In this document: positions 9,253 to 52,306 of the stretch, one piece after another
Position numbering within the stretch: the first letter of the stretch is position 1
How the letters are laid out: each line of letters opens with the position of its first letter
NCBI GenBank assembly: GCA_977017575.1
Contig: CDRNVI010000156.1
Span: forward strand, 124,001-188,000
Source of the DNA: Paramoeba atlantica
Taxonomy: Eukaryota > Protista > Discosea
Direction of reading: 5' to 3'
Length of the DNA stretch: 64,000 nucleotides
Notes under the pieces: model-generated
The model's database searches: none
What the model saw: the letters and a program-made list of their open reading frames with translations, nothing else
Told to the model about the DNA's origin: nothing
Made by a program: the position numbers and the translations under genes

Positions 9253-12200
9253 ATGAAAGAGCAAAGAGGATTGTTAATCCTTCCCCTCTTCGTTCTTTTG
9301 ATCTTACATCAGTGTTTTGGAGATCAAAGGAGTTCGTCCGATCCAGAATTTGCTAAATCTTGGAACCTCAAGCCAACCTCGGCGATACAGAGAGGCCACA
9401 TCAATGTTCAACCAGCCTGGGATTTTGGTTTTACAGGAGCAGGTCGATTCTCTCTTTTTCTCTTTCTTTCATTCTTCTTCTTTCTTTTTCTGATCGCTTC
9501 ATTCTAAAGGGGTGACTGTTGGGCTTGGTAACCATGCCCCAAATAACTATCATTTAGAATTGAAAGGAAAATTAAGTTCTCACGTTTGTTTTTCTTCTGA
9601 TCTCTCTCTTTTTTTTTCACTTTGGGTTTTCGAAAAAGAAGGTTGGGGTTCTGACCACTCTTTTTCTTTCTTCTCTTCTTAGTCTCTTGAGATTTATGAA
9701 CGGTATCAAAAAAATATGACAACATCAGTTGTGGCAGTGGCACTAGGGAAAACAATGAATGGTGTTTGTAGCCGCGGTGTTGCTCATGGTGCTTCTTATT
9801 CAATGGTTGCCTTTGGGAGCCAGGTAACCAAGATATTCCTTTCTTCTCCTTTGATTGTTTTCTCATCTCTCAAAACAATTTTCAGGGATGGAAACATCTC
9901 GATTTTCTGGCAAGCCCTGTCCCTGTTGATATTTATATCAGAGATTTCGTTGGGAATGATAATCCCAAATCTAATAGCCAATGTACTTTTTTATGACTTT
10001 TTAAAAAACTTATTCACCAAAAAAAAAGAGAAAATTTTGAAGAAGGTCCTTATTTTTGGAGAAATAGGTACTAAGTGCTGGGACAATGTAAAGGCTGCGA
10101 TTGAACGAGAGAAAATCATCATTGGATATTCTGGTTTGAAGTTTTCGTCTTTCCCTCAAGGAAAAAGTTTCCTATTTCTTTTTCCTCCCCCTGATCTTTT
10201 TTATTCTTTTTCATCAGGAAATGGTGGTGAAGATGACAACTGCAATTATGATATGTACGCGAATGCACCATTTGTGATCAATGTTGGAGCTCATACAGCT
10301 GACGCTCAGCCTGCTCCCTATTCTGAGCACTGTTCTAGTATTGTTCGTTTTTGTTTCATCTTGATACATTGGTAGAATATATTTTTTGATGAACTGTTGT
10401 TGTTTTTTAGCTTGTTTCTGCTCCTGGTGGAGATAAAACACATGGAATCCCAACAGCCTCTGCTCGAGGTTCAGATTGTACCCACACAACATATGGTGGG
10501 GAACTTGCAGCAGCAAATACAGGTTTTACACATGACACATTTAAGAAAACGAAATTTATTTTTTTTTTGTTCTTTTTATTTATTTATTTTTTAATAAGCT
10601 GGAGTTGTTGCTCTCATGCTCGAAGCCAAAATGCATCACATTTCAGCTCGTGATGTTGCCCATATTCTTGTAGACAGTGCGAAATTCCCCCCAAAAGGAG
10701 TTTCGAGTAGTCAGAATGGGGCTGGAAGGGCCTACAATGACTACATTGGGTTTGGAACGATTGATGCTGGGGAGGCTCTTCGAAATACAATTCTCTTTAC
10801 TGGACTTCATTACCCAAGAGTTTGACCTTCTTTTACTTCTTTCCTTTTTTCTTTGTGGATTTTTTTTTAAAAATGAATTTCGTCCCAAAAGTCTCTAGTT
10901 CAACAAATGGCGTCTCACTCCATCCCTGATGGAGGAAGAGTGTCTCTCGAAGTTCCTTTTGAGTCAAATTACAATGTTGATTGGGTTTGAAAATCTTTTT
11001 CTCACTCTGTTGAAAACTTGGTTCATTGATTCATATAATAATGAATTATTTTTGTAGGTGACTGTGGAAGCAGACATTATCCACACTGCACCAGGAGATT
11101 TAGAAATTTCTTTGGTGTCTCCTTCTGGGACCACCGCTCGCTTGACCAAAGCGAGACATGCCTCAAAACGGCGTGTTAAATTCTCTTTTTATATATTTTT
11201 TCCCCCTTCTTCTCCTACACAATCACTCACTTCCTTTTGAAAATACAACAGTTACTCGCCGTTGTTTCTGCATCTAGAAAGACTTTTGCTTTTCATGTTG
11301 AACCAATTAATTCTGGTATAAATTTTCTCCCTTTGAGTTCATTTCAAGAGTCTCTGTCTCTTGAATAAATTAATAAAAAAAATTCATTCTCCAAAAAAAG
11401 GATCACGTACTTGGAAAGGAAGGGATCATGTTACCTTCTACACAACAACAGAAGATGGAGGTTGCTGTTCTCTCGGACGCAGCTGTTCTTTTACCCTGAC
11501 TCAGTTCCTTTTTTTTTTGAATTTTTTTTTTCCTGAGATTTCTTTCTATTATTCTCATTTTTTCTAATCTCTGATCGTTCGGTTTTCCTCTTTTAGACCT
11601 AAAGTTCCTGAAATCACTTACATTCTTGCTCTCAAAGATCATGGTCTCTGTCCTCCAGAAACCGAGTTGAGAAATGCTTTTAATCGCAACAACCCATACC
11701 AGCCTGATGTTGTGTTGCTTGGTATCTCATTTTTGAAATTTATTTTCATTCTCCTTTCTCCTTTTTTGTTTGAAGGTGACAAAAATTGTAGGAGGATCAA
11801 GGGCAAGATGGACACAAGTCTCACAGGGGAGAGGTGGCATCATTTTTGGTGTTTCAGATTCAGAATTCAGGTTTTTGTCGCTTTTTGGGTTGGGACTTTT
11901 TCAAAGCTCAATATTCTTATTAATTTTTGTGCCCACAACAGAGAGATTGATACACGAGTGGAGGATGCCAAATTATCAATTAGCAGCAAATATGATAAAA
12001 TTCCGGAACTCTCTTTGGAAGACTGGAAATTTTCAGCGACAAAATTCTGGGGTGAAAACCCAACAGGTTTTATTTTTCCTCAGTTTTTTTTTTGGCATGT
12101 AAATATTCATTAATTTAATTTTTTTTTTTCCAGGAAATTGGTTGTTTATGATTAAGGACACTGCCAAGCTTGACGAGGGAAGAGTCCAAAACTTTCAAAT

Positions 12201-12975
12201 GACTGTTTACTTATACAGCGACACGTTGCCAACCCCAACCCCAACCCCAAGTCCAACACCGACTCCAACACCAACTCCAACACCAACTCCTGCAATGAAT
12301 ATGAAATATTGCTGTGTTTATACCCATACCTCGAATTCTGGGTTGCATCAATGTAATCCAACGAATTCTGAAATCTGCCAGGAGTTCAGGGGGTGGGCTC
12401 TTACTTCTCAAACTCTCGTTCCAGAGGCTGAATGTGTAGAGATTTGCTCGAACGCTCCTACACCACCCCCTGCTGCTTTCAAACCTTGTTGTGTTTATTC
12501 TCACCAGTCGTATGACTTGCAACAATGTCTTCCTCTTGCTGAATGTTCACCATTTGGTGGTTGGACTCTTGTTTCGAGTTCGAGCATGTCTGAATCGGAT
12601 TGTGTGGCAAGTTGCGCTCCTTCGAATCCAACACCACCACCCGCTGCGTACAAAAAATGTTGCATTTATTCCCATGATTTCTATGATTTGAAGCAGTGCC
12701 TCCCTCTCACTGAATGTCAAGCGTTTCAAGGTTACGTTCTTCAATCCGATAATAGGATGTCTGAGACCGATTGTGTGAATGCTTGTGTCCCCAATAACCC
12801 AACACCCCCACCCTCCATCCCCAAAAATTGTTGTGTTTATTCTCACCAGTCGTATGATTTGAAACAGTGTCTTCCTGTGAAGACTTCTGTTTGTGAAGAT
12901 TTTCAGGGGTGGGCTCTTGATTATAATCAAATGATGGCAGAATCAGAATGTATGGATATTTGTGAAACAGTATAA
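9253..12975 (+). CDS. Kexin/furin-like S8B pseudoprotease K1: signal peptide, S8 domain, P-domain with PA-like insert, PT linker, 4 CCVY modules
   Basis: DPEFAKSWNL...INVQPAWDFGFTGAGVTVG...NGVCSRGVA...[14 protein letters not shown]...YSEHCS...[10 protein letters not shown]...GFGTIDAG; P-domain [12 protein letters not shown] and DWKFSATKFWGENPTG. Triad-equivalent residues D>N, H>M, S>E. Confidence 0.88.
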
Positions 12976-13194
12976 ATCTTTTTTTAAAATATGACCTCTC
13001 TTCACCTTTGTTTGTTGCCTTTTTCTCTCAAAAGAGACACCAAAATTTAAGCATTTTTTTAGAAACCTTTTTCTATTTTTGTTGTTTTTTTGCGCTTTTT
13101 TTTTGCGTGTGAGCCGTCGTTGTCGTTCGTGGCGTTTGTTTTCCTCCTCCTCTCTCTCCTTTCTCTTTCTCTTTCTTGCAAAAAAAAAAGAAAG

Positions 13195-16100
13195 ATGAAA
13201 GTTCTTCTTCTTGTCTTTTTTTTGGTCTTGTTTAATGGGTGTCTTTGCTCTGAAGAAAGAAAGAATGGGAATGATCCCGAGTATTTTAGTGCTTGGAATC
13301 TCGCCGCCAAAGCAGGAGTTTCGACTGGTCTTCATCTTCTTCTTTTCACTTTTTTTCTTTCTCTGATTGGATCTTTCTTTAAAATAAAGGAAACATCAAT
13401 GTGGAAGAAGCATGGGATCTTGGTTATACAGGAGCAGGTTTGTCTTTAACTTTTTGACAAGTTGATAAAAAACAAAGAACCAACAAGAATCTTCTTTGAA
13501 GTTAAACTTTTCCTCTTTTCTTTTTCAAAAAGGAGTGACGATTGGGTTTGGTTTGAATGCTCCAAACCCAAATCACGTAGAACTTCAGGGAAAATTAAGC
13601 TCTCAGGTTTTTTTTCTTTTAATTAAAAATGCTCTCTCCCCCTCTCCTTTACCCTTTTTCTTCTTTCTCCTTTGCCTTACCATCGCTTTTCTCTTTAGTC
13701 TCTCTCTATATCTTCCCGTGATCAAACGAGCGAAGCAACATCAGTAGTTGGTGTGGCTGTTGCAACAGCTTTTAATCATATTTGTAGTCGTGGTGTTGCC
13801 TATGGAGCTCTTTTTTCCATGGTCGGCCTACAGAGACAGGTTTTTTCTCTCTCTCTCTCTCTCTTTTTGCTTATTGAGAGGTGTTTGGTAAATCACAATG
13901 ACAAAACAGAAGTTGAAAGGGCTTTCTTTTTTGGGAAGTGACATTCCAGCAGATGTTTATGTCAGAGATTTTGTTGGGAGTGATCATTTCTCAGCAAATT
14001 CTCATTGTATATTTTTTTTTGTCCTTTTTCTTTTTTGGGTGGGTTGAAACTGATGGGCTCCTTCTATTTGTGTGGTGCAGGTTCAAGATGTTGGGACGAT
14101 GTATTGGATGCTGTTGGACGCAAGAAAGTTGTTGTTGGATATAATGGTTGAGAAAAGATTTTTTTCACTCTTTCCCTTTTCGTGGTCTTTTGGCTCACAT
14201 GTTTTTTATTTCTTCGCACAGGGAATGGTGGGAAGAATGATAATTGTAATTATGATATGCATGCTAATGCTCCATTTGTGATTAATGTTGGATCTCACAC
14301 TGCTGACGGAATTCCTGTTGATTATTCTGAACCATGTTCCGCTCTTGTATGTTTTTTTTCTTTCCTCAAATCTATATTTTATTTCCTTTAATCAAATATT
14401 TTAGCTTGTTTCTGCTCCTGGAGGAGATGATAAACATAGAGTGCCAACAGCCTCTTCAACAGACTCAAGTTGCGGACATGTTTCGGGTGGACAATATGCA
14501 GCTGCACATACAGGTCTTTCCTTTTTTTTGATCAATCATTTCTTCTGCATCTAATTCCCCTTTTCTCTTTCATAATAGCTGGGGTTGTGGCTCTCATGTT
14601 GGAAGCAACCAACCACCGTCTCTCTCCTTTTGATATCGCTCACATTCTTGTTGAGTCTGCAACTTTCCCACCTCAAGTGCGAGGAGAGCGGAATGGGGCT
14701 GGATTGTCGTATAATGATCAAATTGGATTTGGGATGATTGATGCTGGAAAAGCAGTCAAAAACGCTCTGCAATATCCAGGACATTTTTATCCATTGGTAT
14801 TGTCAATTCTTTAATTCATTCTTTTTTTCAATTCTGATTTGATTATTTGTGGAATTGTTTTATTCCCCAGCCTTTGTTTTATCGCCTTGAGGCGCCTCGA
14901 GATCTTCCAGACAAAGGGTCGGTGTCGATTGAAGCCTCTTTTCAGTCGAATTATTTCGTTGATTGGGTTTGATTTGATTCTCCAAAACAGCCAAATTTGA
15001 ACTATTATGATTTGATTTTGAGAATTGACTGTTGTTTTGGTAGGTGACTGTTGATGTAGATATTGCTCATGAGTCAGTGGGTGATTTGGAAATATCTTTG
15101 ACTTCTCCTTCTGGGACAAAAAGCGTTTTTTCAAACTACAGGCACTCAACGAATCGTGGGGTTTGGAATTTTCTTTTTTTTCTTTTTAACAAGACTTTTT
15201 TCTCTCCTCTCAATATCCGAAATAGTTCCAAGCTCTTGTTAAGAGTGCAGAAGGATCATTCTATTTTTTTACTGAACCAATTAATGACGGTTTTGCGCTT
15301 TTCTTTTTTTTTAGTTTGTTTTTTCTCTCTCAAAACTAAACATTTTTCTTTCTTCTTCAGGGGCCCGGTCTTGGAGCGGAGCCAATAATGTTATCCTCTT
15401 TTCGCCAATTACTGATGGAGCTTGTTGTCAATCAAGTAGTTGTGTTTATACTTACCCTGGGTTCCTCTTTGATTTTTGAATGAATTTTCAAAAGGACCCT
15501 TTTGTTCTCTAATTCTATTTTTTTCACAGAGTGGAGAAGGACCCTGACACGGTTTATATTATTGTTTTGAAAGCTCATGGAATGTGTACCCCAACAAGAG
15601 AATTGCTCATAACCCAGAATCGGCGGAGAATCACCCCAGATATTGTCTTTGTCGGTTTGTCTTCTTTTCTTGATCTTTTTCATTTGAGACAATTTTTTTT
15701 TTAATCATACAAATTTGAAGAGGGAGATAGGACAAGTTTTACAGAACTAATCGATCAGAAACATATGCTGGTCTTTGGTGTTTATTCAGAGCAGTTCAGG
15801 TTGTGCTTATTTTCCTGTGGTTTCTGTTTTTTCAAAAAATATTAAAATTTCCAATTTTTTCAGTCGAATCCAGCTTCCTGAAGGAAACGGGAAAATCACC
15901 ATCTCCCAAAAATATAAAAAAATATCTGGTCTCTCTTTTGAAGACTGGAAATTTTCATCCACTAAATTTTGGAATGAAAGTCCTACAGGTAAAATTTTTG
16001 GATTCTCATTTTTTTGAAGAATTTTTTTTTCTTTTTTTGAAGCAAACATTCAAAACAGGATCTTGGCGGTTTAAAATCCATGATAATGCCCAATTTGACC

Positions 16101-16912
16101 AAGGAATACTCCAAAACTTGACTCTCACTCTTTACATTTACGGAATCAATCCTTCATCTCCCATACCCACTCCAACACAAATTCCTTCCCCGACCCCAAC
16201 ACCAACACCAACACCAACCCCAACCTTCTCTCCAACTCCAACCCCAAGCCCAACTCCCACCCCAACTTCAACACCAACACCAACTCCAACCCCAACTCCA
16301 ACACCAACACCAACTCCAATTGCTTCCTTGGATCATCGAACTTGTTGTGTTTACTCCAGAATGGGAACTCCTCAAGTGAAACTTTGCAGCCCAACAGCCT
16401 CTGATGAATGTAAAATTTATAATGGATGGGACTTTAATTACCAGACCCTCGCCACTGAAGTTGAATGTGTGGACATTTGTAATGCAGAAACTCCTACCCC
16501 ACCTCCTGTATCTGCTCTGAAAAAGTGCTGTACTTACGTTCACGATTTGTCCAATACAAAGCTCTGTCTTTCGGTAAACAGTTGTCAAGATTTTCCAGGT
16601 TATTATCTTGAGTCTGAGACACCGATGGATGAATCTGACTGCGTTACGAGTTGCGATTCTCATCCAGTTGGTCTGGCCACTCCAACCCCACTTCCAATTC
16701 CATCACCAACCCCAACACCAACACCAACCCCAACTCCAACCCCAACTCCACCACCAAAAACGTGCTGTGTTTATTTCAATGAACAATATCAGTTAAGTCA
16801 GTGTGTTCCTCAGGATGAAGAGGATTGTGATCAGTATACGGGGTGGGTGATAGATGCCAACCTTTTCCTTCCAGAAAGTGAATGTGTCAGCATTTGTGAA
16901 GCTTTAACATAA
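13195..16912 (+). CDS. Kexin/furin-like pseudoprotease K2 (3 CCVY modules)
   Basis: MKVLLLVFF signal; DPEYFSAWNL; GVTIGFGLNAPN (D>L); EATSVVGVAVATAFNHIC (H>E); [16 protein letters not shown] (S>Q); GNGG and DNCNYDM retained. Confidence 0.88.
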
Positions 16913-17099
16913 AAAAACGATTTTTTACATTTTCTTTGATTTCATTTTTAAAAAACCTGGGAAAGAAAGAGAGAGGGAACGACACCAGAATTGACCATTT
17001 GAGGAAAATTTTCGTTTTTTCGTTTTTTTTTTCCACCTTTCCCCTTCGGTTTTCTTCTTTTTTTCCTTTCCGTTTTTTCTCTCTTTCTGATTTGAAGAG

Positions 17100-20000
17100 A
17101 TGAAAATCTTTGCTCTTGTCATATTCTTTATTTTATTTTTTGGAGGTTTTTGTCAAGATCCTGATTTTTCAAAAGCTTGGAACCTTATTCCCACAAGAAA
17201 AGTGCCAGTTGGTCTGTTTTCTCTTTTTTTTTTACCTCTCCCTCTTTTCGTTTCTGATCTGATCGGTTGAATTCTTTTTTCTCTTTCTTCTTTCTTGAAA
17301 AGGAAATCTCAATGTTGAAGAAGTGTGGAGTCGTGGTTATACAGGAGAAGGTTGTCTATTTCTTTTGGGAACCTCGAAGAAAGAGAAGAAAGAGAAGAAA
17401 AGAAAAAAGAAAAGATTCAGATTTGTGGAAGAGGATTATTTTTTTTTGACTGAGGAAAATCTTTTTCATTTTTCAAGGAGTTACGCTTGGCTTTGGTTTC
17501 AACGCTCCAAATCCAGATCATGAAGAACTTCAGGGAAAATTAAGCTCTCAAGTTTTTCTATTTCTTCGATTCATTGTTATCCAAACTTCCTTGTTCTTAT
17601 GCAAGTGTCCTTCTCTCTCTCTCTCTTTCCTCTTTTAGTCTCTAGAGATCAATTCACATGACCAAAGTGACGCAACATCAGTTGTGGCGATGGCTGTGGC
17701 AAATGCAAACAATGGTTTTTGTAGTCGTGGAGTGGCGTATGGGGCGCTATATTCGATGGTCGACATGAAAGAACTGGTTTTTTCCCCTTCTTTTTCTTTC
17801 TTTTGAGCAAAATTATTTTGTTTGATTTTTGAGAATGATCTCTCAATTTTGTCAGAAATGAGAAAAGAGAAAGAAAAAGAGAATCAGCCAATTTTGCCAA
17901 TTGGATAATAAAAGACAAGCAGGGGTCGGAAGGATATTCTTTTTTGAGGGGGAATATTTCAGCTGATATTTATGTGAGAGATTTTGTTGGAAGTGATGAT
18001 CCTATGTATAATGCTCCATGTATTTTTATTTTTCTTGTGATTTTATTTTTCTTTTTAAATTTTAAAATGGCTGTTTCAATGTTGGATTCCTTTCTTCTTC
18101 TTTTGTTAATTCCTTTGATTTTTCTTTTCCAGGTTTAGAGTGTTGGGAAACTTCAATGGAAGCACTTAAACTTAACAAAATTATTGTTGGATTTAATGGT
18201 TCATTTCCCCCCCTTTATTTCTCAATGTTTTGTTTTTAGAAGATTCTCTTCACAGGAAATGGTGGTCCAAGTGATAATTGTAATTATGATATGTTCGCAA
18301 ACACCCCTTTTGTGATAAATGTAGGATCTCACACTGCTGATGGAATTCCTGTTGATTACTCTGAACCATGTGCCACAATTGTAAGTTTTTTTATTCTTCT
18401 CTTGAAAGCAACAAACAATGCATTAAAAATGGTTGTAGCTGGTTTCTGCTCCTGGTGGAGATCAGAAACATCGGATGCCAACAGCAGCCTCAAATTCAAG
18501 GGAAAGTTGTACACAGGAATCAGGAGGACAATATGCAGCAGCACAGGCAGGTTTTTATTTTTATTAGAAAATAAAATCGAGAATTAGGATAGATGTCTCT
18601 GATACATTCATCTTTTTTTTCAATTAGCTGGAGTCGTGGCTCTCATTATTGAAGCAACACAGCACACTCTTTCTGCTGCCGATATTGCTCAAATTCTTGT
18701 TGAGTCTGCGAATTTTCCATCTCATGTTTCAAAAGAGCGAAACGGGGCTGGGTTGTGGTATAATGATCAAATTGGATTTGGGATGATTGATGCAGGAAAA
18801 GCAATCAGGGTAGCTCTTCAGTATCCGAAACATTATTATCCTCAGGTCGATTCATATTTTTTCAAGTTTTGATTTCGTTTCTGCTCTTTTTGATCCATGT
18901 TTTTGCGCAGCCTCTGAGTTTTCGATCGGAAGAAGTTCATCATCTTCCAGACGGAGGGGTGATGACACTCTCACCCACTTTTCAGACGAATTCATATACT
19001 TTCATTGATTGGGTTTGATCTATTACTGTTCCAAAATTTTTAATTTTCGCTAACCAAGAAATCGAATTTGGTAGGTGACTGTGGAAGTAGATATCGATCA
19101 TGATTCAGCAAGTGATTTGGAAATATCTTTGATTTCTCCTTCTGGTACAACAAGTGTTTTTACCAGAGCGAGGCATGAGATCGTTCATCGGGTATTTTGG
19201 TCTCTCTTTTTTGAAAATTCATGTGATTTCTAATTTGAGTACAACTGATTCAGTTACGAGTTACTCCCCATGGTGCACGGACATTTGATTTTCGTGTTGA
19301 ACCAATCAATGAAGGTTTGATTGATTTCCTTTGTGTTTCAACTGAAAATCAAATTGATGTCCCCTTTTAGCTGCCCAAACATGGAAAGGGGCCAATGATG
19401 CTGTCTTTATTACCATCACTGGTTCTTGTTGTCGCTCCACTGACTGCTCGATTGGGTTTTTTATTTTATTATTTTCATTCCATGTGTTCAATTTTTATCG
19501 TCTTGTCGCTTTTTCTTTTTTCTGAGCGATCTGATAGAACGAAGATATCTGGGACGACTTCCATTCTTTTGCTCGAACAACAGAAAATTTGTACTCCCTC
19601 GAAGCAAATTCTTGTGATAACAAGCCAGCATCCCGTCCCAGATGTTATATTTGTTGGTTCGTAGCTGCTTGCTTCTTTTTCTTCCCTTTTCTTTCATAAC
19701 CTTTTTCATTTCCGATCTTAGAGGGAGAGAGGAGCGATTGGTCAAAGATAACACAACGAAGACATGGTGTGACCATCTTTGGTGTTCTTCCAAGTGATTT
19801 TGCGTTCTCTTTTTGCATTTGTTTTTTCCAATCTTTGAGTTTGAGTTTAATTTTTGAATTTTTTAGGGATATCAACCCAACTCAGCTGCGCTTTGGCATA
19901 GAGAAAATCTCTGACTTTTCATATGAAGACTGGAAATTTTCATCAACAAAATATTGGAATGAACATCCCTCTGGTGATCTTTTTTCTTTTTTCTTTTGGC

Positions 20001-20458
20001 TTTCCTCTCATTTTTCCAAATGACTTATTTTTGAAAAAGGAACTTGGCAATTTACAATTCATGATAAAATCCCTCTTCACCAAGGAATCCTTCGAAATTT
20101 TTCACTCACTCTCTACTTGAACACTCTCATTCAGCCTTCTCCAACTCCAACACCAACCCCACTCCCAATTCCAACTCCAACTCCAACTCCAATTCCAACT
20201 CCATCACCAACTCCGACACCAATCCCAAGCCCAACTCCAACTCCAACACCAACACCAACACCAACTCCACCTCCAACACCAACACCAACCCCAGTGCCAA
20301 ACAAAATTTGTTGTGTTTATTATCATGAAAGCTTTAATTTGAATCAGTGTGTTCCACAGGATTCAGATGTTTGTGAAGAGAAAAAACCTCCAGGTTGGAT
20401 CGTGAACGCAAAGCTCAGTCTCCCAGAGTCTGCCTGTTTGGGGATTTGTCTCACATAA
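17100..20458 (+). CDS. Kexin/furin-like pseudoprotease K3 (1 CCVY module)
   Basis: [10 protein letters not shown] signal; [10 protein letters not shown]; [12 protein letters not shown] (D>F); [18 protein letters not shown] (H>D); [11 protein letters not shown] (S>Q). P-domain, insert and tail exons splice in frame. Confidence 0.87.
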
Positions 20459-20515: not shown

Positions 20516-22356
20516 TCAGCGTGATAAGACCGCTGAGGCAACTGTTGGTGTTCGTTCAATCTCTTGTTGACTTCGGATCAGGTGGTGGTAGAAGATCAAC
20601 TCCTTCCACCAGATGAGGACAAAGGAATTTGTAAAGTAGAAAACCACACTCATCATCAAAGGAAAGAAATAGAACAAAAACAGATTAAATGCAACAAGAG
20701 CCCCACCAGAAGTGCTCCGTGTGCAAGGAGGTGGATCTTCCCTTGGAGATGAACCAACACACTCAACATAATCTGCAACGTTTGTGCTGTTAATTTTATA
20801 AGAAACGTGAAACCAGGTCCCGATATAAACGACAAGGTACATTTGAGAGAAAAGGCCCCTCCATTGATGAGAGAAAATTCTCCAATTCATTTTGAGGATG
20901 AATCCGGTCGAGAGAAGGATGGTCAAGAGCATGATACTTAACAAAACAGAAAGAGTCCCACGAACAACGTCAAGGAAGATGTTCTGTGGGTAACTGACAA
21001 AGATAAAGACGAGAGGAAGAACAACGATTTCGTCAGAAGGAGAATCATGGGTGAAGAAGTAAATCAGAAAGAAGATGAAAAAAGGGAGAGAGAGGAGAAT
21101 GCAGGCTGTCAGAAACCCAAACACGATTCTTTCGTGAACTGGTGGCTCAACAAATTGGTTGAAAAATGGGTAATGCTTTCTTTTATCTTTTAGTTAGAAG
21201 CCAAATTAATAAGAAATAGAGAGCAAAATAAAAAACAAAACCGAGTAATGCAACACAAGGTGGTAAAACTCATTACAATCCAAAGAAAACTGATCAAAAT
21301 AAACAAGGTGGAGGTGAAACTAAATTGAATTCCTGCGACTGTTGATTTGGCAAAACTTTCCAGGGCTATGTAATAATCCTCTTCATTTCCACAGACATAT
21401 TTTTCTGGTCCTCCTATTTGAAGATTGGATATTGAGTTTGAGCTTTTTGAGAAAGAGAAGGAGAAGAGAAAGAGAGGAGATGAGAAATGAGAGCCGCAGG
21501 GGAAAAAAGAGAAAAGACAGGGGAACCTGCGAAATCTGCGAAAGAAGCAAGGATGTTTGCGAGAGATATGAGAGAAATGAGTAGGGGTAGCAGAAAATTT
21601 GGGTACCTTTCAAAAAAAAAGAGAAAAATTTCAATTCTTCTTTTTCATCCTTCTTTTCTTTGGAGTTTTGGAATAATTAAATACAAACCGAAAATTGAAG
21701 GACATCTTCACAAAAGGAAATATTCCAAGAAAGAAAACAAGAATTCCAACCCAAATGAACACAAAACAGGCGATTCGAACTGATCTTTCAAATTGTTCCC
21801 CAAATTCATATTGTAAACATTCTATCACACACTCTCCTTCTGAATCAAAAACAAAAGGATTTGGACAACATTCAATGGTTTGTCTCTCTTCTCCCAAACA
21901 TGTTTCAACTTCAATTGGATTTTCTGTCATCTCTTCAATTTCCTCTAATATTCTTTGAGAACAAGGACTTTCTTTCTCATAAGGAGAGAAGGGACAACCA
22001 AGAGAAAGATTGTAATCTTCACATCTTTCACTAACTTGAATACAACCTTCAACCTGACGACAAAAAATCTCTTCTTCCGTCTCAGGAGGACAAGAAAGAA
22101 AAACTGACCCACAAAGATACCACAACAAAGGTCTCCGACAAGAAGAAGGAATCATTCGAATGTCAGATACATCCAAATCGATTGCCTCAAAAAGAATCTC
22201 TTGTATTGTTCTGTTCTCTCTCACATCTGATAAAAGAGAAGAACATTCATTTTGAAGTTCGTATTCGAAACAAGGAACAGAGGGGGCAGAAAATAGTTGG
22301 TTTGAGACAACGTTAAACTTCAAACTCAGCAGAAAGAGAAAAAACAATAAAACCAT
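20516..22356 (-). CDS. Frizzled/Smoothened-like (class F) GPCR: signal peptide, cysteine-rich domain, 7TM
   Basis: CRD-type C...LLWYLCGSVFLSC...C...C pattern; linker CCPNPF...ECVIEC..YEF; multiple hydrophobic helices; ECL3 Cys pair (YVECV...PPC); post-TM7 FVLIWWKE, similar to the Smo/Fz K-T-x-x-x-W position. Confidence 0.8.
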
Positions 22357-22489
22357 AACCCGCGGAGAAAACGGAAAATAAAACGGACCAAAGTTTTGGA
22401 AAACAATTTTTTTCCAAAAATGTTCCGATTTGGTGTTGTTTCCTGTTGCTTTCTTCTCCATTCAGTTATTTATTTTAGGGAATTTTTAT

Positions 22490-33300: not shown

Positions 33301-34121
33301 GCATCAAACAGTGTTTGACACTGGAAACAACAACTTGCCCTAATTTGCCAAAATGGAGACTTTATTCTCAAACAATGGAGTATGATAATGAATGTGAAGT
33401 ATATTGTGCTCCCCCTCCTCCTGCACCAACACCTACCCCAACGAGAGCTCCAACACCAGCACCAACCCCAACACCAACTCCTGCACCGATAAATTGTTGT
33501 GTATATTCTGCTATCCATGATTCTTCCCGCATTCAGTGTTTAGAAATTCAAGGAAGTTGTCATAATTTAGTGAATTGGAGATTGATATCTGTCGAATTTT
33601 ACAGCGATTGCCAATTTTGTTATGCTCCTTCCCCATCCCCAACTCCAACACCTCTCCCAATCCCAACCCCAACCCCAACACCCACTCCACTTCCAGTTCC
33701 AACACCAACATCAGTTCCCACCCCAACTCCAACAGTTCTAACCCCAACTCCAGCACCATCACCAACACCAACACCAAACGTTCCAACACCTGTCTCTTTG
33801 AAAAATTGTTGTGTTTATTCCAATCGAATGAACCCAGAACTGAGCCAATGTCGTGCAACAATGTTTGATGAGTGCCAAGAGTACAATGGTTGGAATCTAG
33901 ACCATAAAACGCTCAGACCTGCGTCTGAATGTGTGGAACTCTGCACCACTCTCACTCCAATCAAGATCCAAAACTGTTGTGTTTATTCGAATCAAGTCGT
34001 CCCAAGTTTGAAATTATGCCTTCCGACTGATTCAGATCAATGTGGATTTGTGCCGAATTGGGTTATTGATTATAATACTTATCTTTCAGAAGGGTCATGT
34101 ATGGAATTATGTGAATCATGA
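30330..34121 (+). CDS. Kexin/furin-like pseudoprotease K6 (4 CCVY modules)
   Basis: MRLSFFFFFF signal; DPDYSRSWNL; GVTIGFIGEGP (D>G); RKTSVVSVAVGKAFNNVC (H>R); CTNQFGGATAAAHTAG (S>A). Confidence 0.87.
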
Positions 34122-37300: not shown

Positions 37301-37935
37301 CGTTATGTGCCCCTCCTTCTCCATCCCCCTCACCAACCCCATCTCCTTCGCCAGTTGCCCTGAAAAATTGTTGTGTTTATGCCCACGTGAGCGCAAGTTC
37401 TTTGAAACAATGTCGACCAAGCAGCTTCGACACTTGTCAAGAATTTACGAGTTGGGTCCTTGATTACAAGACTCTCATTCCTGAAACAACTTGTTTGGAA
37501 ATATGCACTGCAACACCAACTCCTCCTCCAACTCCAACACCAACACCCGTTTCCCCTACACCTGTGAAAAATTGTTGTGTGTATTCTTACGAGAAAAACT
37601 CCGAAGTGAAGCAATGCAGGCCAAAGAGCTATGGTGATTGTCCACCATCGAAAGGTTGGAATTTTGAATTTAATTCATATGTAACAGAACAAGATTGTGT
37701 GGGACTTTGTGAAGCCACGCTAGCAACACCAACTCCTCCCCCCACACCAACACCCACACCTACTCCACTTGCAGCTGAACCACCCAAAAATTGTTGTGTT
37801 TATTTCTATGAGTCCAATTCTGCTGTGAACCAATGCCGACCAACAAATTCGGTTGTTTGTCAAGATTTTGGTGGATGGGTTCTTGATTATAAGACATCTA
37901 TTCCAGAATCAGAGTGTTTGGGTCTCTGTTTTTGA
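34361..37935 (+). CDS. Kexin/furin-like pseudoprotease K7 (4 CCVY modules)
   Basis: MKLFFIWG...VEFSW...REKR..DDPLYSSSWHL; GTRIGTGFLAPN (D>F); IATAALGTIVATANNNVC (H>I); GGQYAAAIVAG (S>Q). Confidence 0.87.
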
Positions 37936-38115
37936 TTGAAAATGAAAGGTGCTCCCTTCTTTTGTGGTTTTGTGTTCGCTTTATTTCTCCTTCAAACCAA
38001 TAAAAATTCAGAATAAAAATTTCTTGAATAAGAGATTGAATCGATTTAAGAATAATGAACTATTACAAGAGTAAGGCGTCAACAAAAATTCATTGAGTTT
38101 CAATTAAATTGAGAC

Positions 38116-38520
38116 TTAGACAAAGTTAGATCCTCCTTGCCCGTTGGGGTGATGACCAGGGCCATGATGAGGACCAGCGTTGTCAGGCCACTCGACATCA
38201 ACGCACAACTCGCCAAGAGCGGTCTCCTTTTGACAAGTTTTGAAATTGGTTCGGCAAGTCTCATCACAGGCATGGAAACATTCCCGAGATTGCACTTCGC
38301 AACCACAGCAGGTCAAAAGAGTATCATGGCAAACATCATGAGCATCTTTGCAAGCTTGTTGCTCCTCAGTGAGGTCATCAGGGCGTTCGTGCTCAGGGCG
38401 TTCGTGTTCAGGGCGTTCTCCATGCTGTTGGTGTTCAGGGCGTTCACCATCAGCGGTGGGAGCCTGGGCTTGAGCAGCCACAAACAAGAGTGCAAAAACA
38501 AACAAAATCAAACGCATCAT
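38116..38520 (-). CDS. Small intronless secreted Cys-rich protein with (H)ERPEH repeats (134 aa), unknown function
   Basis: Signal MMRLILFVFALLFVAAQA; ERPEH-type repeats; Cys-rich core CKDAHDVC...CCGC...C..AC..TC...TC...C; His/Gly/Pro-rich tail; GC-richer third codon positions than its neighbours. Confidence 0.8.
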   Translation of the reverse strand: MMRLILFVFALLFVAAQAQAPTADGERPEHQQHGERPEHERPEHERPDDLTEEQQACKDAHDVCHDTLLTCCGCEVQSRECFHACDETCRTNFKTCQKETALGELCVDVEWPDNAGPHHGPGHHPNGQGGSNFV

Positions 38521-38553
38521 TCTTGAAAGCAACCAAAGGAAATTTGTTTTGTC

Positions 38554-39100
38554 TCATTTTTTGTGCCCCAGAGGTTTTTGAAATAGTCCCAAACATTTAA
38601 AATAGTCATGATATCGACAAAAAAGACCTCTTTTTTTCGGAAGCAGGTTTTGATGCGGAGAAAAGGGTTTAAATTCGATTGTTTCTTTTTTGGCGTCGTT
38701 CAAAAGGTCTTGAAAATCTCTCAACCTTTTCGTGATGAGGAAGACGAAGAATGAAGGGAGACGAAGAATGAGATTGTTGCGGTTTTTGAATTTTCCAAAG
38801 GTCGTTTCTGGGGTTGTTTTTCGAAGAAAAATTGGATAAAAGTTCCCTCTTTTTCTTTCAAAAAGTCCTTCCATTGTTGATCGAAGGAGTGGGTCGTGCG
38901 TGTGATGATCCCAGAACCCCTTTTCACTGTTGCTGACCATGGAAACACTAACAACTCCTTCCAATTTGGGTCTTTTCGACAACTCAGTCTGAGAAAACTT
39001 GAAAACCAGCTTTCTTTTGCAGCCACCACTCTTTTGTTTCCATGCTCAGGCCCACTTCTTCCTGCTCTACCTTCTTCTCCCCTTTCTTCCACCTCTCCAT
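38554..39100 (-). other. Possible short gene of unknown product; frame and splicing unresolved
   Basis: Less T-run-rich than the surrounding introns, with overlapping open frames (MERWKKGEKKVEQEE...; ...WDHHTHDPLLRSTMEGLF...). I could not build a consistent spliced model. Confidence 0.25.
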
Positions 39101-39338
39101 CTCTTTGAGGAGTCTTCTCTTGTCTTCTTTCTTCTCTTTCCTTCGGAACAGCGAGCAGAAAAGCAAGAAAAAAAGGGAAAAATAAAAATTCCCCTAATTT
39201 AGACAAGATCCCGAGATTTTCCTAATTTAGGTATTTTAGGTTTTCTTTCTTTTTCGTTGTGGCCCAAAGTCAAGGCGTTTGAGGCGTTTTGTCCTCCTTT
39301 TCCTCTCTTTCGTTCTTCTCTTGAGACCTTCTTTCACC

Positions 39339-42300
39339 ATGAAACTCTTCTTTGTTTACTTTCTTTTTGTGACCACTTTTCTTTTCTCTTCTGCGAGTTT
39401 CGTTGAGTTTTCTTGGGGTCTTGATCACCACCAGGTCCGAGGTCTTTCTTGGGGAGAACACAGTTGGGATGATGATGATGAAGTCCCAAAGTATGATGAT
39501 CTTGATCCTTTCTATCCAGCATCTTGGCACTTACATTCAATGGCCACACTTGATTCAAGTCCTTATGCTCAAGTTGATGGTATATAATTTTGTTTTTTCG
39601 CTTCACATTTTCTTTTTTGGTGAGGGCTGAACCATTGCTCGACAGTTCATGTGAATGTGGAGGGAGTCTGGAAGATGGGATTTCAAGGACATGGTCTTTA
39701 TTTCTCTCTTTAATAATAACATTTGAATGTGGAAAAGACTCAAGAAGTTTGAACAGGAATTAGGATTGCCACAAGTTTCATTGCCCCAAATCCAAATCAT
39801 CGTGATCTTGTTGGTCACCTTGAACCAGTGGTAAACTTTTCTTTTTTTTTGTGATTTTCTTTGTCTTCTTGAAACTCTCTTTAACAATTTTTAGGTGACC
39901 ATAAGTAAGCCATCTGAAGTGGCAACCTCCATTATTGGGACTGTTGTAGGAACTGCATTTAACGATGCTTGTACAAGAGGAGTAGCTTATGAAGCTTCTT
40001 ATTCTGTTGTTAGTGTTGGAATTGAGGATGCTATGGATTTAAAGTTTTTGACCATGGATTCGCCTGATATTTTTCTTCAAACTTTTAATGCTGAAAGTGG
40101 CCAAACTCCGTGTGAGTATTGTTGGGAGAATGTGAAGGGTGTCTATGACCGAGGGCTCGTTGTGGTCGCTTTTACAGGTTTTTTCCCGATCTTTCTCCTT
40201 ACATTGGAGTGGTTCAATGCATATTCACATAAGTTTATTTTTTGTGAAAAGGAAATGGAGGAAGACAAGATAATTGTAATTATGATATGTATTCCAATCA
40301 CCCATTTTCGATCTCTGTTGGCTCTCATATGTTTGGGGGTTTTCCAAGCGATTTTGGAGAACCTTGTGCCAATGCGGTTCAATTTTATTTTGATAGAAAA
40401 AAACAAAATTCGAAAACTCTTCTAATCCATCTTTTAGTTGATCTCTGCGCCTGGAGGATCATCTCTGAAAGGAATTCCTGCGCCTTACAAATCTGACAAA
40501 TCTTGTTCCGAAAGAATTGGGGGACAATACTCTGCTGCTATTGTTGGTTTGTTTTTCTTTATCAATTTACTTTTCAAGAGACTGAATATAACTTTGTGTT
40601 TCTGTTAGCTGGTGTTGTTGCATTAATGTTAGAAGCGAGTGCCCGAAGACCAGGTCCTCGAGAAATTGCTCATATCCTTGTAGAAACTTCAAAATTTCCT
40701 GATCAATTCCCTGGTCTTCAAACAAATGGAGCAGGGCTCCTCTTTGATACTCAAGTTCGTTTTTCATCATCCGAAAATCACTGATAAAATCGGTAATTAT
40801 TTTTCTTAGCTTGGATTTGGGATGATTGATGCAGAAGCTGCTGTTAGAATGGCCACACAGAACTCTCTCCCATATTATATTCGCCCAGAAGAGGTACGTT
40901 CTCTTAGAAAAGAAATTTTGTTTTGTTTTCAAATCTTTCGCCATTTATTTCTTCGAAAAGAAAACAACTTCGTTTTATCTGAATATTTTTTCTTTAAAAG
41001 GATATTGTTGTTGAACTCACAACCCGAAAATATATTCCCAATCCAGGAGAACTACGTTTTTCGATTGAGGTCGAAATTCCGGGTCCTTACAAAGACTTTT
41101 TGGTTGATTGGGTTTGACTCAAAAATTTGGTTCCATGTTTTGACCTGATTCATTCTCATTTTTTTGGGGTTAGGTTACATTGGAATTGAATATTGAACAT
41201 GACCAAGCAAGTGATTTAGATATTTCACTGCTTTCTCCTTCTGGAACAAAAAGTGAATTGGCATTTTCACGAAATCAAAAGCCTGATCAGGTTTTTTTCC
41301 TTTGAAAGTTGGAAATCTCTCAATTCATTGAAATTTCATTTGAACCAAAGCTGGATCTTGTACTCTCTTTCCCAACTGGATTTGAACGCCCTATTGCAGT
41401 GAAATCACTCAGTGCAGGTTGGTTTTTTTTTTCAGAAACCTTGTGATTTATTGGAGCTAAAATTTGAGTTTCCAAGCTGGAGATGCTTGGCAAGGAGGCC
41501 AAGTAATTTTATTTGCACCTCGACAATCAGGAGCTTGCTGCAAAATGGAAACGTGTCTCTTCTCTCTTCAAAGGTTGTTGCTTCTTCTTTGTCCCATTGT
41601 TTGGTTGGATGTTCATTCTCCAAATTCTAAAAAAAAAATTCTTTTCATTAGAAAAAGGCCTGGAGTGACTGGAATTTTATTATTGGATTCAAATAAGAAG
41701 TGCACTCAGCACGAAGAGCTTATGGGAGTCCTGAACACAGAAGCTCAGCACCTTGTTGATGGAGTCATTTTTGGTTCACAATTTCGAATTTGACCTTCTT
41801 TTCCATTCTAGATTTTGACCAGCTCTTGCAGAAAATTATGAGGAATTTGAACCAGATTTAAGAAATATTCCTGTTTATTCAACGAATCCAAGTGACTTTC
41901 GATTATATCTCTTTGAAAACCAGCAACAAGTGATGCCTGCAGAGGTGCAGCAAAAAGGAGCGAAAGTTCCAGATCTCTCTTTTGCGCCTTGGAAATTTTC
42001 AACAACCAAACATTGGCGAGAGAAAGCAGAAGGTCAAAATCAATTGATTTTATGAACAAATTAGAAAGGGAATAATCCGTTATTGATTTTGAAATTGAAA
42101 TAGGAACTTGGGTCGTACAAATTAATGACCGAAAGAACGGGGATTCCGGGCTTCTTCGAAGAGCAACATTGAGGCTACATACTTATTCAACACGACCTCC
42201 TCCATCTCCCTCACCAACTCCAATCCCGACTCCAACACCAGTCCCAACACCAACACCAACACCTTATTCTCGAAGAGTAGCCCCTTGTTGTGTCTATTCT

Positions 42301-43215
42301 TTTTTTGGTGATGCAGCAATCAAGCAATGTTTGACACTTGAAACAGATTGCCCAGATATCTCGAATTGGGCGCTCACTGCCCAGTCAATAGAATATGAGG
42401 AGGATTGTGCTGCTCATTGTGTTGCTCCCACTCCCACTCCTACCCCAACCCCACTCCCAACTCCATCCCCAAGTCCATTCCCAAGTCCATCTCCTGCTAC
42501 AAGCAACTGTTGTGTCTATTCTTTCATTCATGATTACAACATCCTGCAATGTCTTGAGATGACAGTTCCTGAATGTGCCCAGTTGTTCAACTGGAAGCTC
42601 CTCTCTGTTGAATATAATAGTGACTGCCATTTTTGTGACCCCCCTTCTCCCACTCCTTCTCCATCACCAACTCCCACACCAACACCAACCCCAACACCAT
42701 CTCCTAGCCCAAGTCCAACTCCAACACCAACCCCAACCCCAACCCCAACACCAACCCCAAGTCCAGCTCCAACTCCAACTCCAACACCCACTCCAACTCC
42801 AACCCCTACTCCAACCCCAACACCCCAATTTATGTCAAACTGTTGTGTCTACAGTCTCGTTTCTGATCCGTCAATCAAAGAATGCATGACCCACACTTCA
42901 AATTGTCCCAGATTACCAAACTGGATTCTGAGTTATGCATCAATAGATGTTGTTGATGACTGTTTCAAATTGTGCACGAATTCATCTTCTCCCTCTCCCC
43001 CAGCCCCTTCTCCCTCTCCCACACCTTTACCACCAACTCCATTATCACCAACTCCAGCACCAGTTTCTTACAAATATCGATGTTGCCTTTATGAGTCATT
43101 TTTTGATGACACAAGATGTTTTACCTATCCAAATGAACAGTGTCATGAATTACAAGGATTAAGATTCTATGATTCATATCCAATTCATGTTCCAGATCAT
43201 TGTGTGTGTCATTAA
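39339..43215 (+). CDS. Kexin/furin-like pseudoprotease K8 (4 CCVY modules)
   Basis: MKLFFVYF...VEFSW leader; [10 protein letters not shown]; [12 protein letters not shown] (D>F); [18 protein letters not shown] (H>V); [16 protein letters not shown] (S>Q). Confidence 0.87.
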
Positions 43216-43395
43216 AATAAAACAAATCAAGATTGTTTTTATTGTTGTCATATGAGGAAAAGCTCTTCTTGTTCTCATCCAATTCAGAAAGCCTCTCATT
43301 TTTATTTTTGAAAAATCTTGTGAATATTGGAGTTGAAATGGTTTTCACCGAAAACTTCAAAAAGGAGTTCGGAACTGAAAAAAATGAAAGAAATT

Positions 43396-46300
43396 CTAGT
43401 CGCAGAAGGAGGAGCAATCATTCTCCTGCTGAGGAATAAACTCAGTGAAGAGAGTGAAGCCAGATAACAAAGGACATTCGATTGTTAAGGTAAGGCATTT
43501 CTTTGCAAGTGTTTCGTCTTCTCTAATGTACCAACAACATCGATCTGGGTTTGGAGTTGGAGTTGGAGAAGGTGTTGTACATCCTGGACCATAAACCAGG
43601 TCTGGATCTATTCCTTGAAATGGACCAACTGTGGAAGAATACCACGTCCGTGCTCTTTTCATTTGGTTAACATCAGGTCCTGTAATCGAAACAGAGACGA
43701 CTGAATCTATGATTCCTTCCCACCGAATGGCATAAAAGGTTTCTTGGGAAGAGGAATATTGCTCCAAGAAACCGTTATTTGATATCGATATTTTATACTA
43801 AATGACAAAATGAAAAAAGGAAAAGTTAAATAGGGGAGCGAGAAGAGAGAATAATTGAGAATTCGAACTCAAACCTCTTGGATTGCAAGATGATTGCAAA
43901 AGGCCAGATCAACATAAAACCGTTCTTCTGTTGATTGAGGATTGGAAAAACTTCCAGAGGTTATGTTATAAGACCAAGTTATTCGAGAAAGGGTTTCATC
44001 ATTCTTCAACCCAACAAATTTTAACTGCAAGGGAGAAGGAAATAATGGAGTTGGAACTGGGGATGGTGTTGGTGTTGGGCTTGGTTCATTGTGATTGCAG
44101 AGATCATAGCATTCTTCGTCTGTGATAAAAAGAGAGGGGAAAAGAAGCCGATATCCAAGCAAATCATGGCACCCTTCATTGATGGGAAAGCAGATATCTT
44201 TCTTTGATTCTCCAAGCTCAGCTGTGTAATAACAGCATTGATTTAGGGCTGAGTTCTCTGAAAACGGGGTTGGTGTTGGAGTTGGGGTTGGAGTTGGGAG
44301 AAGAATTTGCGAAGAGGACATTGAAAATGTATGGAGAGTAAGAGTGGGTGATCGGAGAAGACCAGAGGCAGTTTCGAAATCATCGGCAATCACCAAAGAC
44401 CAGGTTCCTTGAATAAAATAATATGAGGATCATCCTTCTTTTTTCTTCATGTGATGATATGAAGGAGGGAACAAACCTGCGGCACGTTCAAGCCAATGTT
44501 TTGTTGTTGAAAACCCCCAATTCTCGAAAGTTAAGTCCTAAGAAGGGAGGATGAATTTTTATTCAAACAAAGAAGGAAAAAACTTTTCTAAAAACATACC
44601 ACAGATTCTGGCAGTTCTCGAGATTTTGCAAGCTCACTTTTTGTACCGCTTGGGGATATTAAAGTGATACTCAAATGAGCTGGTTGGGGGTGTTGAATAT
44701 CAGCAAAGACTGTAACCTATTGAAAAGTCTTAATTATTTTTTTTCGTGGAAAAATTGTACGCATTTTCTCCAAACATAATCAACAAGAATCGTGTCTTCA
44801 GCTGATATTTCATATAAAACCGTCAGTTTCCCCTTCTCTGGGATCAGTTTCTCCCTGAAAATTGAAGAACGAGGAGACTGAAAAATATTGTCAATGAAGA
44901 AGTGGAGGTCGAAAAAAATATTAAAATGAACCTGCTCAGGGTTGATCAAATAAGGGCGGTTGATCTTCCCTGCTGCCATTTGAACGGCTTTGTACGCATT
45001 AAGATTTCCAAAGCCAATCTATTCAGCAACATAAATTGATTGATCAAGAAGAAAAAACAAATTTTAGATTCAAAACCTTTTCGTTATATTTTAGACCGGC
45101 TCCATTAATTTTATACTCAACACCAATTGGGAATGATGATGTCAAAACAAGAATGTGCGAAATATCTCTTGGTGTTAACGTCGGATTTGCTTGCTTCATT
45201 AGAGCAACAACACCAGCTTTTACAAAATAATGAATAAAGCTTGAAACAAAAAAAAAACATTCAAGGGACCTGTCATTGAAGCTGCATACTGTCCCCCCAC
45301 TCTTTCAGAGCATTCTATTCCATCAGAAAATGACACAGGAATTCCCTTTGAGGTGTCTCCGCCGGGAGCTGAAACAATCTATCCAAATACATGCAATACA
45401 TAGGATTATTAAAATGTGGCTTCATAAAAATTGATGGTTTTCTAAAAAAGCAAAATTCCAAACCACATTAGCGCATGGTTCACTGTACTCACTTGGGATA
45501 CCTTCTGATGTATGAAAACCAACACAAATAGAGAATGGATGATTCGAATACATATCATAATTACAATTATCACCATCCCTCCCATTCCCTAAAATGGTAC
45601 AATTGAGCAAGCAAAGTTGAAAAGAGATTGGATTTTAATTTGAAAGAGAAACCTGCGTAACTCACAACAGGGATCCCACGAGAAACAGCACTCTCGACAT
45701 TTTCCCAACACTTTTTACCTAAAAAAAAGGAAAATCTGATTAAAATGATGAAATGAAAGAAAAAAGAAAAGAAAATCAAACAAAATCGATGGATTTTTCC
45801 TCCTTCAGCAGCAGTAAATGTCAGAAGGAAAATATCTGGCGCATCATCGTCATTCAAGAGAAATTTCAAATCAATCGCAGCCTAACTCAATTCCGAAATC
45901 AATTCATTCCAAATAATCATAGAGAAAGAGAGAAGAGAGAACCTGGCTTCCAGGTTGAATGGTTGAAAAGGAGGCACCATAAGCGACTCCCCGAGTACAA
46001 ACATCATTAAAACCGTTTCCCACTGCTGTTGCCAAAATTGCAGTTGCGATTTCTTGGGGAAAATTGGTTTTTACCTTTTCATTTGAAATGAATGATCGAT
46101 TTTTTTTGAAGGAAAAAGAAAAGAGAAGAGATACTTCTGGGTTTTGGCGGCCGACTAAGTCTTGGTGAGTGTTAAAAGGAGATTGAAAACCATGGCCAAT
46201 CCGAACTCCGGATCCATTGAAACCAAGCTTCTCCCAAACAGGTTGAACATTAATATGACCTTGAAAGAACCAAGCTTACAAATTACCCAGTGGTCATTTC

Positions 46301-46530
46301 AAAAAGAGAAGAAAAAAAAAACCAGTTTGGATCTCTGAAGTGGAGTGGAGGTGCCATGACTCGGCATAAAGAGGGTCGCTTTGTCCTTGTTCTCTCTTCT
46401 CGCTCCTGGACAGATCTCCTCCGGTTACTAAATTCTGTCTCACACTTCCACAATCTTTCCAAACAAAATCATAAGCTTGAAGGGGAGAAAGAATTGTGAA
46501 GAAAACCAGAACAAAACAGATCAAACTCAT
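43396..46530 (-). CDS. Kexin/furin-like pseudoprotease K9 (uninterrupted P-domain; 2 CCxY modules flanking an extra ~120-aa domain)
   Basis: MSLICFVLV signal; DPLYAESWHL; GVRIGHGFQSP (D>F); [18 protein letters not shown] (H>I); GGQYAASMTAG (S>Q). P-domain reads [34 protein letters not shown] with no insert. Confidence 0.85.
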
Positions 46531-46670
46531 CTCATCCCCAAACGAACAACAACAAAACACGCGAAAAAAAAAGAAAAAAGTTTTTCGGTCTGTTTTAAAC
46601 GAAATTTAAATGAAATTTCCTTGTAGATTTACTTTTTCATTGTTGATTTGTCGAATTTTGGTTTTTCTTA

Positions 46671-48494: not shown

Positions 48495-48589
48495 AAACCA
48501 ACAAGATTTAAAAACAACAAAAAAAAAGCAAAAAAACTTAATCATCCGAAAAGGGCCTCTTTATTGGCAAATTGTGATTTTAATTTTCC

Positions 48590-51500: not shown

Positions 51501-52306
51501 TTCTCTTTTGAAAAAAAAAAGAGGGGGTAGAAATCAAACAGAATTGATGTTTTTCTCCTCCCTCCGCAGAGACAAATGTCAAAAGAAAGATATCAGGAGA
51601 ATCAGAGTTCAGAAAAGCTAAGTCTACCGCCGCCTTCGGTTTGGAAGCAATTTCAGTTCATCAATAAAATGTAAAGAACAATGAGAGAAAGATCAAAGAG
51701 ATGAGAACCTGGTTTCCAGGCCGAATGGTTGAAAATGATGCACCATAAGCGACTCCCCGAGTACAAACATCATTAAACCCATTTCCAACTGCCGTTGCCA
51801 AAATTGCTGTTGCTGTTGCTTCTGGAGAGGCGGCATTGACCTTTTATTTTTGAATTTTATTTCTTGAAGAGTCTGAGTTTAGAATTGATGAAAGAAAGAG
51901 GAAAATACCTCTGGGTTTTGGCGCCCAACCAAGTCTTTGTGAGTATTAAAGGGAGCTTGGAAGCTGTGCCCAATTCGAATGCCGGAGCCATTCAAGTGAA
52001 AAGCTTGCCAAACTTGCTCCACATTGATATGACCTTGAAAAACAGAAATGTTGGATCTCCATCCTCTCAAAAAAATAGAAGAAAATAAAAACCAAGCCGG
52101 CTATCAGGGGTGGAGTGAAGATGCCATGAATCTGCATAAAGAGGATCGCTCTGCGCTCTTGCTTGACTTCTTCGAAATTCTCCAAAATCACTTGAACTCT
52201 CTTGAGTTCCACTTTGGATATCCTCCCAAACGAACTCAACAGAGGAGGGCGAAGAAAGAGAAGGAGTGAGAAGAAGAACAAAAAGAAAACAAAAGAATGT
52301 GTCCAT
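48590..52306 (-). CDS. Kexin/furin-like pseudoprotease K10 (3 CCVY modules)
   Basis: MDTFFCFLF...VEFVW leader; [10 protein letters not shown]; [11 protein letters not shown] (D>F); [18 protein letters not shown] (H>T); [11 protein letters not shown] (S>Q). PA-like insert present. Confidence 0.87.

Follow-up and report, generated by a model that had tools for sequence, protein, structure and literature searches.

A tandem array of kexin/furin-derived genes without the catalytic triad in the amoeba Paramoeba atlantica

Can a branch of the kexin/furin-type convertases abandon catalysis altogether and yet be kept, and multiplied, as protein-coding genes? To our knowledge these convertases have been studied almost wholly as enzymes, and the question is raised by a tandem array of ten paralogous spliced genes (A to J) in Paramoeba atlantica, which occupies positions 9253-52306, with the start codons of A and J as its outer ends, in a stretch of 64,000 nucleotides (positions 124,001 to 188,000 of contig CDRNVI010000156.1; hereafter the window). 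The family derives from kexin/furin and has neither a catalytic triad nor a prodomain; at least some of its members are expressed, and purifying selection acts on it. Judged from its sequences, it fits the description of a pseudoprotease, in which the fold is homologous, the catalytic residues are missing and the protein is maintained and expressed. We consider it highly probable that the array represents an old, lineage-restricted branch of the S8B convertases in which catalysis was lost (probably once), which has been kept by purifying selection and whose members act as non-cutting binders or scaffolds.

A six-frame motif search of the window, which is AT-rich (G+C content of 35-43%), returned exactly 10 copies of GN-G..DNCNYDM (G-N-G-x(3)-DNCNYDM), six on the plus strand and four on the minus strand (Table 1), each followed downstream by GG(Q/A/S/E)xAA and then by a P-domain-like G-D-L-x-I-x-L-x-SP-x-GT. 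Exons are short and many in all ten genes, and because they are short, Pfam searches of the raw open reading frames of the window gave no domain match; domains became visible only with spliced or transcript-derived proteins. Gene models were built with our own exon-chaining program, for which 19 introns of G and H verified by transcripts served as the training set. Support came from paralogue and transcript-protein similarity, scored solely at aligned non-gap positions since in-frame intron read-through had given false support. Doubtful splice junctions were settled by hand by comparing exon sizes and peptides across paralogues. The resulting models have GT-AG at every splice site, introns of 46-146 nt, no internal stop codons and proteins of 693-978 aa, and they can be aligned with one another over the whole stretch between signal peptide and P domain, both included. 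The 19 verified introns (34557-40608) are 55-75 nt long and show no GTRAGT consensus, the donor position +3 after GT being T in 11 introns, A in four and C in four; a pyrimidine at +3 in most introns is unusual among eukaryotes.

Genes G and H are transcribed and spliced as modelled. P0001, a peptide from the P. atlantica transcriptome MMETSP0151, threads gene G over 682 of 682 aa and 14 exons without a mismatch, and P0002 from the same transcriptome threads gene H over 333 of 333 aa and 7 exons. In addition, the public protein P0003 (770 aa, from a JGI contig of 2477 nt) combines two genes: its residues 1-152 are identical to gene J (window 52306-51724), and its residues 213-770 agree with gene I at 97-100% (window 45589-43399). 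It supports the splicing of gene I and the expression of both I and J, but must be either a chimera, made in assembly from transcripts of two paralogues, or a recombinant copy located elsewhere in the genome. Finally, the 62-aa P0006 is 97% identical to part of the gene D product. The ten genes are nuclear genes of the host amoeba, P. atlantica; contamination from a Perkinsela-like endosymbiont was ruled out, since they are rich in introns and agree with transcript peptides of the host amoeba.

Relationship to the convertases was assessed mostly with gene G, through P0001. This peptide matched Pfam Peptidase_S8 (PF00082; E 1.6e-9 to 6.6e-11) and the P domain family P_proprotein (PF01483; E 5e-19), the latter match being split into two stretches because of an insert within the P domain. 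With phmmer, the gene G product matched furin at E 9e-24 and Kex2 at E 1e-20. An AlphaFold2 model of P0001 had a mean predicted local distance difference test score (pLDDT) of 80.5, mostly above 90 in the head, and a Foldseek search of the Protein Data Bank (PDB) with this model returned furin (E 1e-29, template modelling (TM) score 0.82) and Kex2 (TM score 0.81).

The positions of the catalytic Asp, His and Ser (furin Asp153, His194 and Ser368) were located in a MAFFT alignment of the ten models with PCSK6, PC7, two protist kexins and one bacterial relative. Asp and His are missing in all ten window genes and Ser is missing in nine, gene E alone retaining it (Table 1); the His column of gene C is a gap in this alignment and D when counted ungapped. 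The oxyanion-hole Asn (furin Asn295) is N in all ten. For example, when the gene G product was aligned with furin (1p8j) using HMMER, D153 was replaced by F, H194 by I and S368 by Q, and SGN295GG was retained. Other parts of the active-site region have been kept (furin numbering): the S1 residue D306, the Ca-site residues D301 and E331 and the C303-C333 pair are present in all ten genes and D/E258 in nine of the ten, and the family has a C-x-x-C-W motif that is new relative to furin. A preliminary description of this DNA, made from the sequence, had proposed kexin/furin homology, listed the residues at the triad sites and stated that no copy has an intact triad. The homology is upheld by both sequence (Pfam and phmmer) and predicted fold, our MAFFT columns are identical to the list residue for residue (with the gene C His site as D, ungapped), and the absence of an intact triad is borne out in ten of ten genes, gene E keeping Ser only. 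The alignment to furin and Kex2 that it had envisaged gave the same result, gene G aligning to both, with F, I and Q facing the furin triad residues.

The loss of the triad extends beyond the window. In a maximum-likelihood tree, all 14 sequences that lack the triad group in one clade (support 100/100), separated from the active convertases by a branch of 1.63 substitutions/site. The 14 consist of the ten window genes, another paralogue from P. atlantica (P0008), two intronless transcript-like contigs from JGI sample 3300012469 (P0004 and P0005) and one sequence from Logan SRR6179834 (P0007). P0004, P0005 and P0007 are 32-34% identical to the gene G product, carry P/S/H, F/K/Y and G/Y/K in place of the triad and have also lost the oxyanion Asn. 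Two sub-families are distinct in the tree, one comprising A, B, C, E and F (sub-family 1; 99/99) and the other D, G, H, I and J (sub-family 2; 100/99). The position of all triad-less sequences in one clade on a long branch suggests a single old loss of catalysis, and the simplest reading of these sequences would be one such loss followed by long maintenance and expansion.

The head is embedded in an architecture that departs from that of the convertases at both ends. All ten N-termini have a hydrophobic stretch of 10-15 residues, with a basic residue ahead of it in nine, and were judged by eye to be signal-peptide-like. In sub-family 1, about 0-10 aa separate the signal peptide from the DPxY..W.L start of the head, and in sub-family 2 a 'VEFSW...' leader of ~40-60 residues, modelled as disordered (pLDDT <50), precedes the head. 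Pfam gave no match to the prodomain family PF16470, and none of the ten models has space for such a domain. In genes G (REKR), I (SEKR) and J (FRR), di- or tetrabasic sites lie a few residues before the head; a genuine kexin may still process the proteins there, or the sites may be left over from such processing. No transmembrane or glycosylphosphatidylinositol (GPI) anchor was found in the ten models, the C-termini of which are formed by Cys modules and lack a hydrophobic tail.

In nine genes (all except I) the P domain is interrupted by an insert of ~146 residues. When the insert was modelled alone with AlphaFold2 (pLDDT 78), the top 50 PDB matches were all PA domains (TM scores of 0.45-0.57, E 5e-4 to 1e-2), including those of ZNRF3, VSR1, PaAP and ScpA (C5a peptidase), and by sequence the insert of P0001 gave no Pfam PA match (PF02225). 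We take the PA identity of the insert as a fold-level lead, short of proof. PA domains in VSR1 and ZNRF3 are peptide- or ligand-binding modules. After the P domain, all ten genes encode Pro/Thr-rich linkers and from one to about five six-Cys modules of ~45 aa each, with the pattern CCVY...QC...C...GW...C...C (e.g., 12290-12975), which corresponded to no Pfam family and no recognisable Atlas family. Gene I also encodes an extra beta-rich-looking region of ~130 aa (LQLKFVGLKNDETLSRITWSYNITSG...; 43875-44407, minus strand) between two Cys modules, which is missing in the other nine genes.

From this architecture, each protein would consist of a signal peptide, a furin-like head without the triad (Ser being kept in E), a P domain split by a PA-like domain in nine of ten, and six-Cys modules on Pro/Thr linkers. 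We infer that the proteins are secreted, probably O-glycosylated, and that they act by binding and not by cleavage, as scaffolds or binding proteins in the cell coat, the extracellular space or the medium. The likely binding surfaces would be the remnant of the former substrate cleft (S1 Asp306 and the Ca-site residues) and the PA-like domain, and a non-catalytic role as a binder, coat component, adhesin or decoy would fit the retention of these S1 and Ca-site residues as well as the presence of the PA-like insert. Several observations weigh against this picture. The acidic S2/S4 residues D154, D191 and D264 and the SWGP substrate-pairing strand have been replaced, so furin-like peptide binding is not to be assumed; secretion is deduced from N-termini read by eye; and direct evidence for expression is weak for genes A, B, C, E and F, expression of this sub-family being supported solely by a guessed-RNA run with 0.37 of the sampled words of 9253-15200. 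A further proposal, which we put forward as a long shot, is that the dead head reads basic (Arg/Lys) peptide motifs via its S1 pocket and the nested PA domain, with the diverged paralogues forming a variable secreted or surface recognition repertoire for prey, symbionts or the amoeba's own coat proteins. If true, a protease fold would have been recruited wholesale as a family of recognition receptors.

The alternative that survives best is that the proteins are not structural components of a coat but decoys or regulators of proteases or inhibitors, which would soak up inhibitors from prey or host or bind kexin substrates. The fold and part of the cleft have been kept, the family is large and diversifying, and the basic sites of G, I and J, situated just before a mature-like N-terminus, suggest contact with an active kexin. 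Nevertheless, the long Pro/Thr stalks and the Cys modules resemble surface or matrix proteins more, and we regard a decoy or regulator function as unlikely, if hard to separate on these data from a general role as binders or coat proteins.

Binding without cutting would be the wrong description if proteolysis persisted through a non-canonical catalytic set, such as the Ser of gene E or family-invariant His, Ser or Glu residues elsewhere. The oxyanion Asn in ten of ten genes, the Ser of gene E and the presence of the family-invariant residues H227, S246, E238 and H301 are compatible with this possibility. However, the canonical positions vary freely both among the paralogues (N/L/F/G for Asp, M/E/V/R/I/T for His and E/Q/S/A for Ser) and among the relatives (P/F/G, S/K/Y and H/Y/K), indicating that none of them is constrained. 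Moreover, S246 (in VSAP), E238 (which corresponds to the Ca-site residue E331) and H301 are inherited structural or Ca-site positions that are present in active kexins too, H227 alone being family-specific, and P0004, P0005 and P0007 do without even the oxyanion Asn. By these sequence comparisons an alternative catalytic set is unlikely, and we hold continued proteolysis by the family to be very improbable.

The strength of selection on the non-cutting proteins was estimated by the Nei-Gojobori method over the head and P domain of the closest paralogue pairs. Amino acid identity, dS and dN/dS were 62%, 1.07 and 0.27 for I-J; 58%, 1.08 and 0.31 for D-G; 57%, 1.30 and 0.27 for E-F; and 56%, 0.67 and 0.50 for B-C. 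Over these pairs, pS ranged from 0.44 to 0.62 and pN from 0.24 to 0.28, corresponding to dN/dS of 0.27-0.5 at a dS of at least 0.67, and since synonymous sites are near saturation, the true dN/dS is lower, if anything. Although decay would also lead to loss of catalytic residues, the view that these are decaying pseudogene copies left from an expansion of active kexins is hardly credible and already contradicted, because neutral decay is excluded by ten open frames of ~700-980 codons with 13-16 correct GT-AG introns each at a dS of at least 0.67, the models need no frame repairs, dN/dS falls well short of 1, transcripts occur in spliced form and the same triad-less family is present in other samples. 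The preliminary description had noted that splice sites, reading frames and signal peptides looked intact wherever traced, had taken this to suggest that the genes are maintained as proteins, and had put forward dN/dS as a check. GT-AG introns and open frames were found in all ten genes, the signal peptides stand as judged by eye only, dN/dS when calculated was 0.27-0.5 and not near 1 in the closest pairs, and maintenance is further shown by the open frames at this divergence, by the exact transcript peptides of G and H and by the near-exact ones of I and J.

Table 1. Positions of the ten paralogues, of the PA-like insert of gene G and of neighbouring genes in the window. Motif, position of the GN-G..DNCNYDM copy; Asp/His/Ser, residues at the three triad columns of the MAFFT alignment.
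Feature	Coordinates	Strand	Motif	Exons	Protein (aa)	Sub-family	Asp/His/Ser	Remarks
Gene A	9253-12975	+	10235	16	857	1	N/M/E	signal peptide straight into DPEF..W.L; four C-terminal six-Cys modules
Gene B	13195-16912	+	14239	17	855	1	L/E/Q	
Gene C	17100-20458	+	18273	17	693	1	F/(gap or D)/Q	one C-terminal six-Cys module
Gene D	26355-22490	-	25364	15	965	2	F/V/Q	~40-60 aa 'VEFSW' leader
Gene E	30035-26638	-	29017	17	751	1	G/M/S	
Gene F	30330-34121	+	31271	17	916	1	G/R/A	
Gene G	34361-37935	+	35246	14	907	2	F/I/Q	R-E-K-R just before mature-like N-terminus
Gene H	39339-43215	+	40269	15	978	2	F/V/Q	
Gene I	46530-43396	-	45571	14	768	2	F/I/Q	sole copy without P-domain insert
Gene J	52306-48590	-	51315	14	937	2	F/T/Q	
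PA-like insert, gene G	36329-36935	+						P0001 residues 433-578; bounds approximate; coding starts slightly upstream in exon 10 (36145-36328); 36329-36391 is intron
Unrelated gene between C and D	20516-22461	-						Cys-rich N-terminal part, several hydrophobic segments, no Pfam match
Flanking gene	53698-54225	-						exon of choline/carnitine O-acyltransferase (E 2e-29)
Flanking gene	59531-60670	-						EGF-repeat protein

When a 96-aa exon of the seventh copy (gene G) was compared with 1.8 billion representative proteins, only 8 matches were obtained, the best being P0001. Neither a word search with P0001 nor a family-profile search of 5.8 billion proteins yielded further members, the only returns being active convertases at no more than 31% identity, and the next best match beyond the family was an active, prodomain-bearing kexin at 30% identity. 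The AlphaFold DB clusters and the ESM Atlas contained only ordinary S8 or P-domain families. In the literature searched we found no kexin-type pseudoprotease family or clade, no description of these Paramoeba genes and no description of a PA-like domain nested within a P domain.

The significance of the array lies in a whole branch of convertases that has abandoned both catalysis and the folding prodomain, yet has been kept, diversified and multiplied. The family offers a natural case from which to learn how a kexin head reaches its fold when the intramolecular chaperone is missing, and what use a convertase cleft has if its sole task is to bind. In addition, the proteins are candidates for coat, adhesion or recognition functions in Paramoeba, to which the agent of amoebic gill disease in farmed salmon also belongs.

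Like the furin/Kex2 convertases (S8B), the amoeba proteins have a subtilisin-like head followed by a P (Homo B) domain, and they share with them the oxyanion Asn, S1 Asp306, the Ca-site residues Asp301 and Glu331 and the Cys303-Cys333 pair. In contrast to furin and Kex2, they have no triad, prodomain or transmembrane anchor, their SWGP strand and S2/S4 acids are replaced, and they add a PA-like domain within the P domain and a tail of Pro/Thr linkers and six-Cys modules. PCSK9 is a convertase relative that acts physiologically by binding rather than by cleavage of a target; unlike the amoeba family, it keeps the triad and the prodomain, performs one self-cleavage and is of the S8A, proteinase-K-like type. 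The expanded kexins of Pneumocystis carinii retain their catalytic residues. These kexins (PRT1/KEX) are present in 13 copies, are predicted to be at the cell surface, where their function is unknown, and are reported to be GPI-anchored, subtelomeric and positively selected (PMC7940399), whereas the amoeba genes lack a triad and a GPI anchor, form an internal tandem array and are under overall purifying selection. CspA and CspC of Clostridioides difficile are S8 pseudoproteases that serve as ligand sensors or regulators (PMC7200643, PMC6636752, PMC12880746), but these are S8A-type proteins of bacterial spores, intracellular and without a P domain, and occur as single genes beside an active paralogue, CspB. 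In protists, Plasmodium PIMMS2 is a subtilisin-like protein with degenerate HGT and GTS motifs that is considered a pseudoenzyme acting in invasion (PMC5520436); it differs from the amoeba family in being of the SUB1 type, lacking a P domain, being membrane-anchored and being encoded by a single gene. Set beside CspA/CspC, PIMMS2, PCSK9 and the P. carinii kexins, what is new in P. atlantica is a clade of S8B proteins with a P domain that is dead as a whole, has no prodomain, carries a PA-like domain within the P domain and has expanded in tandem.

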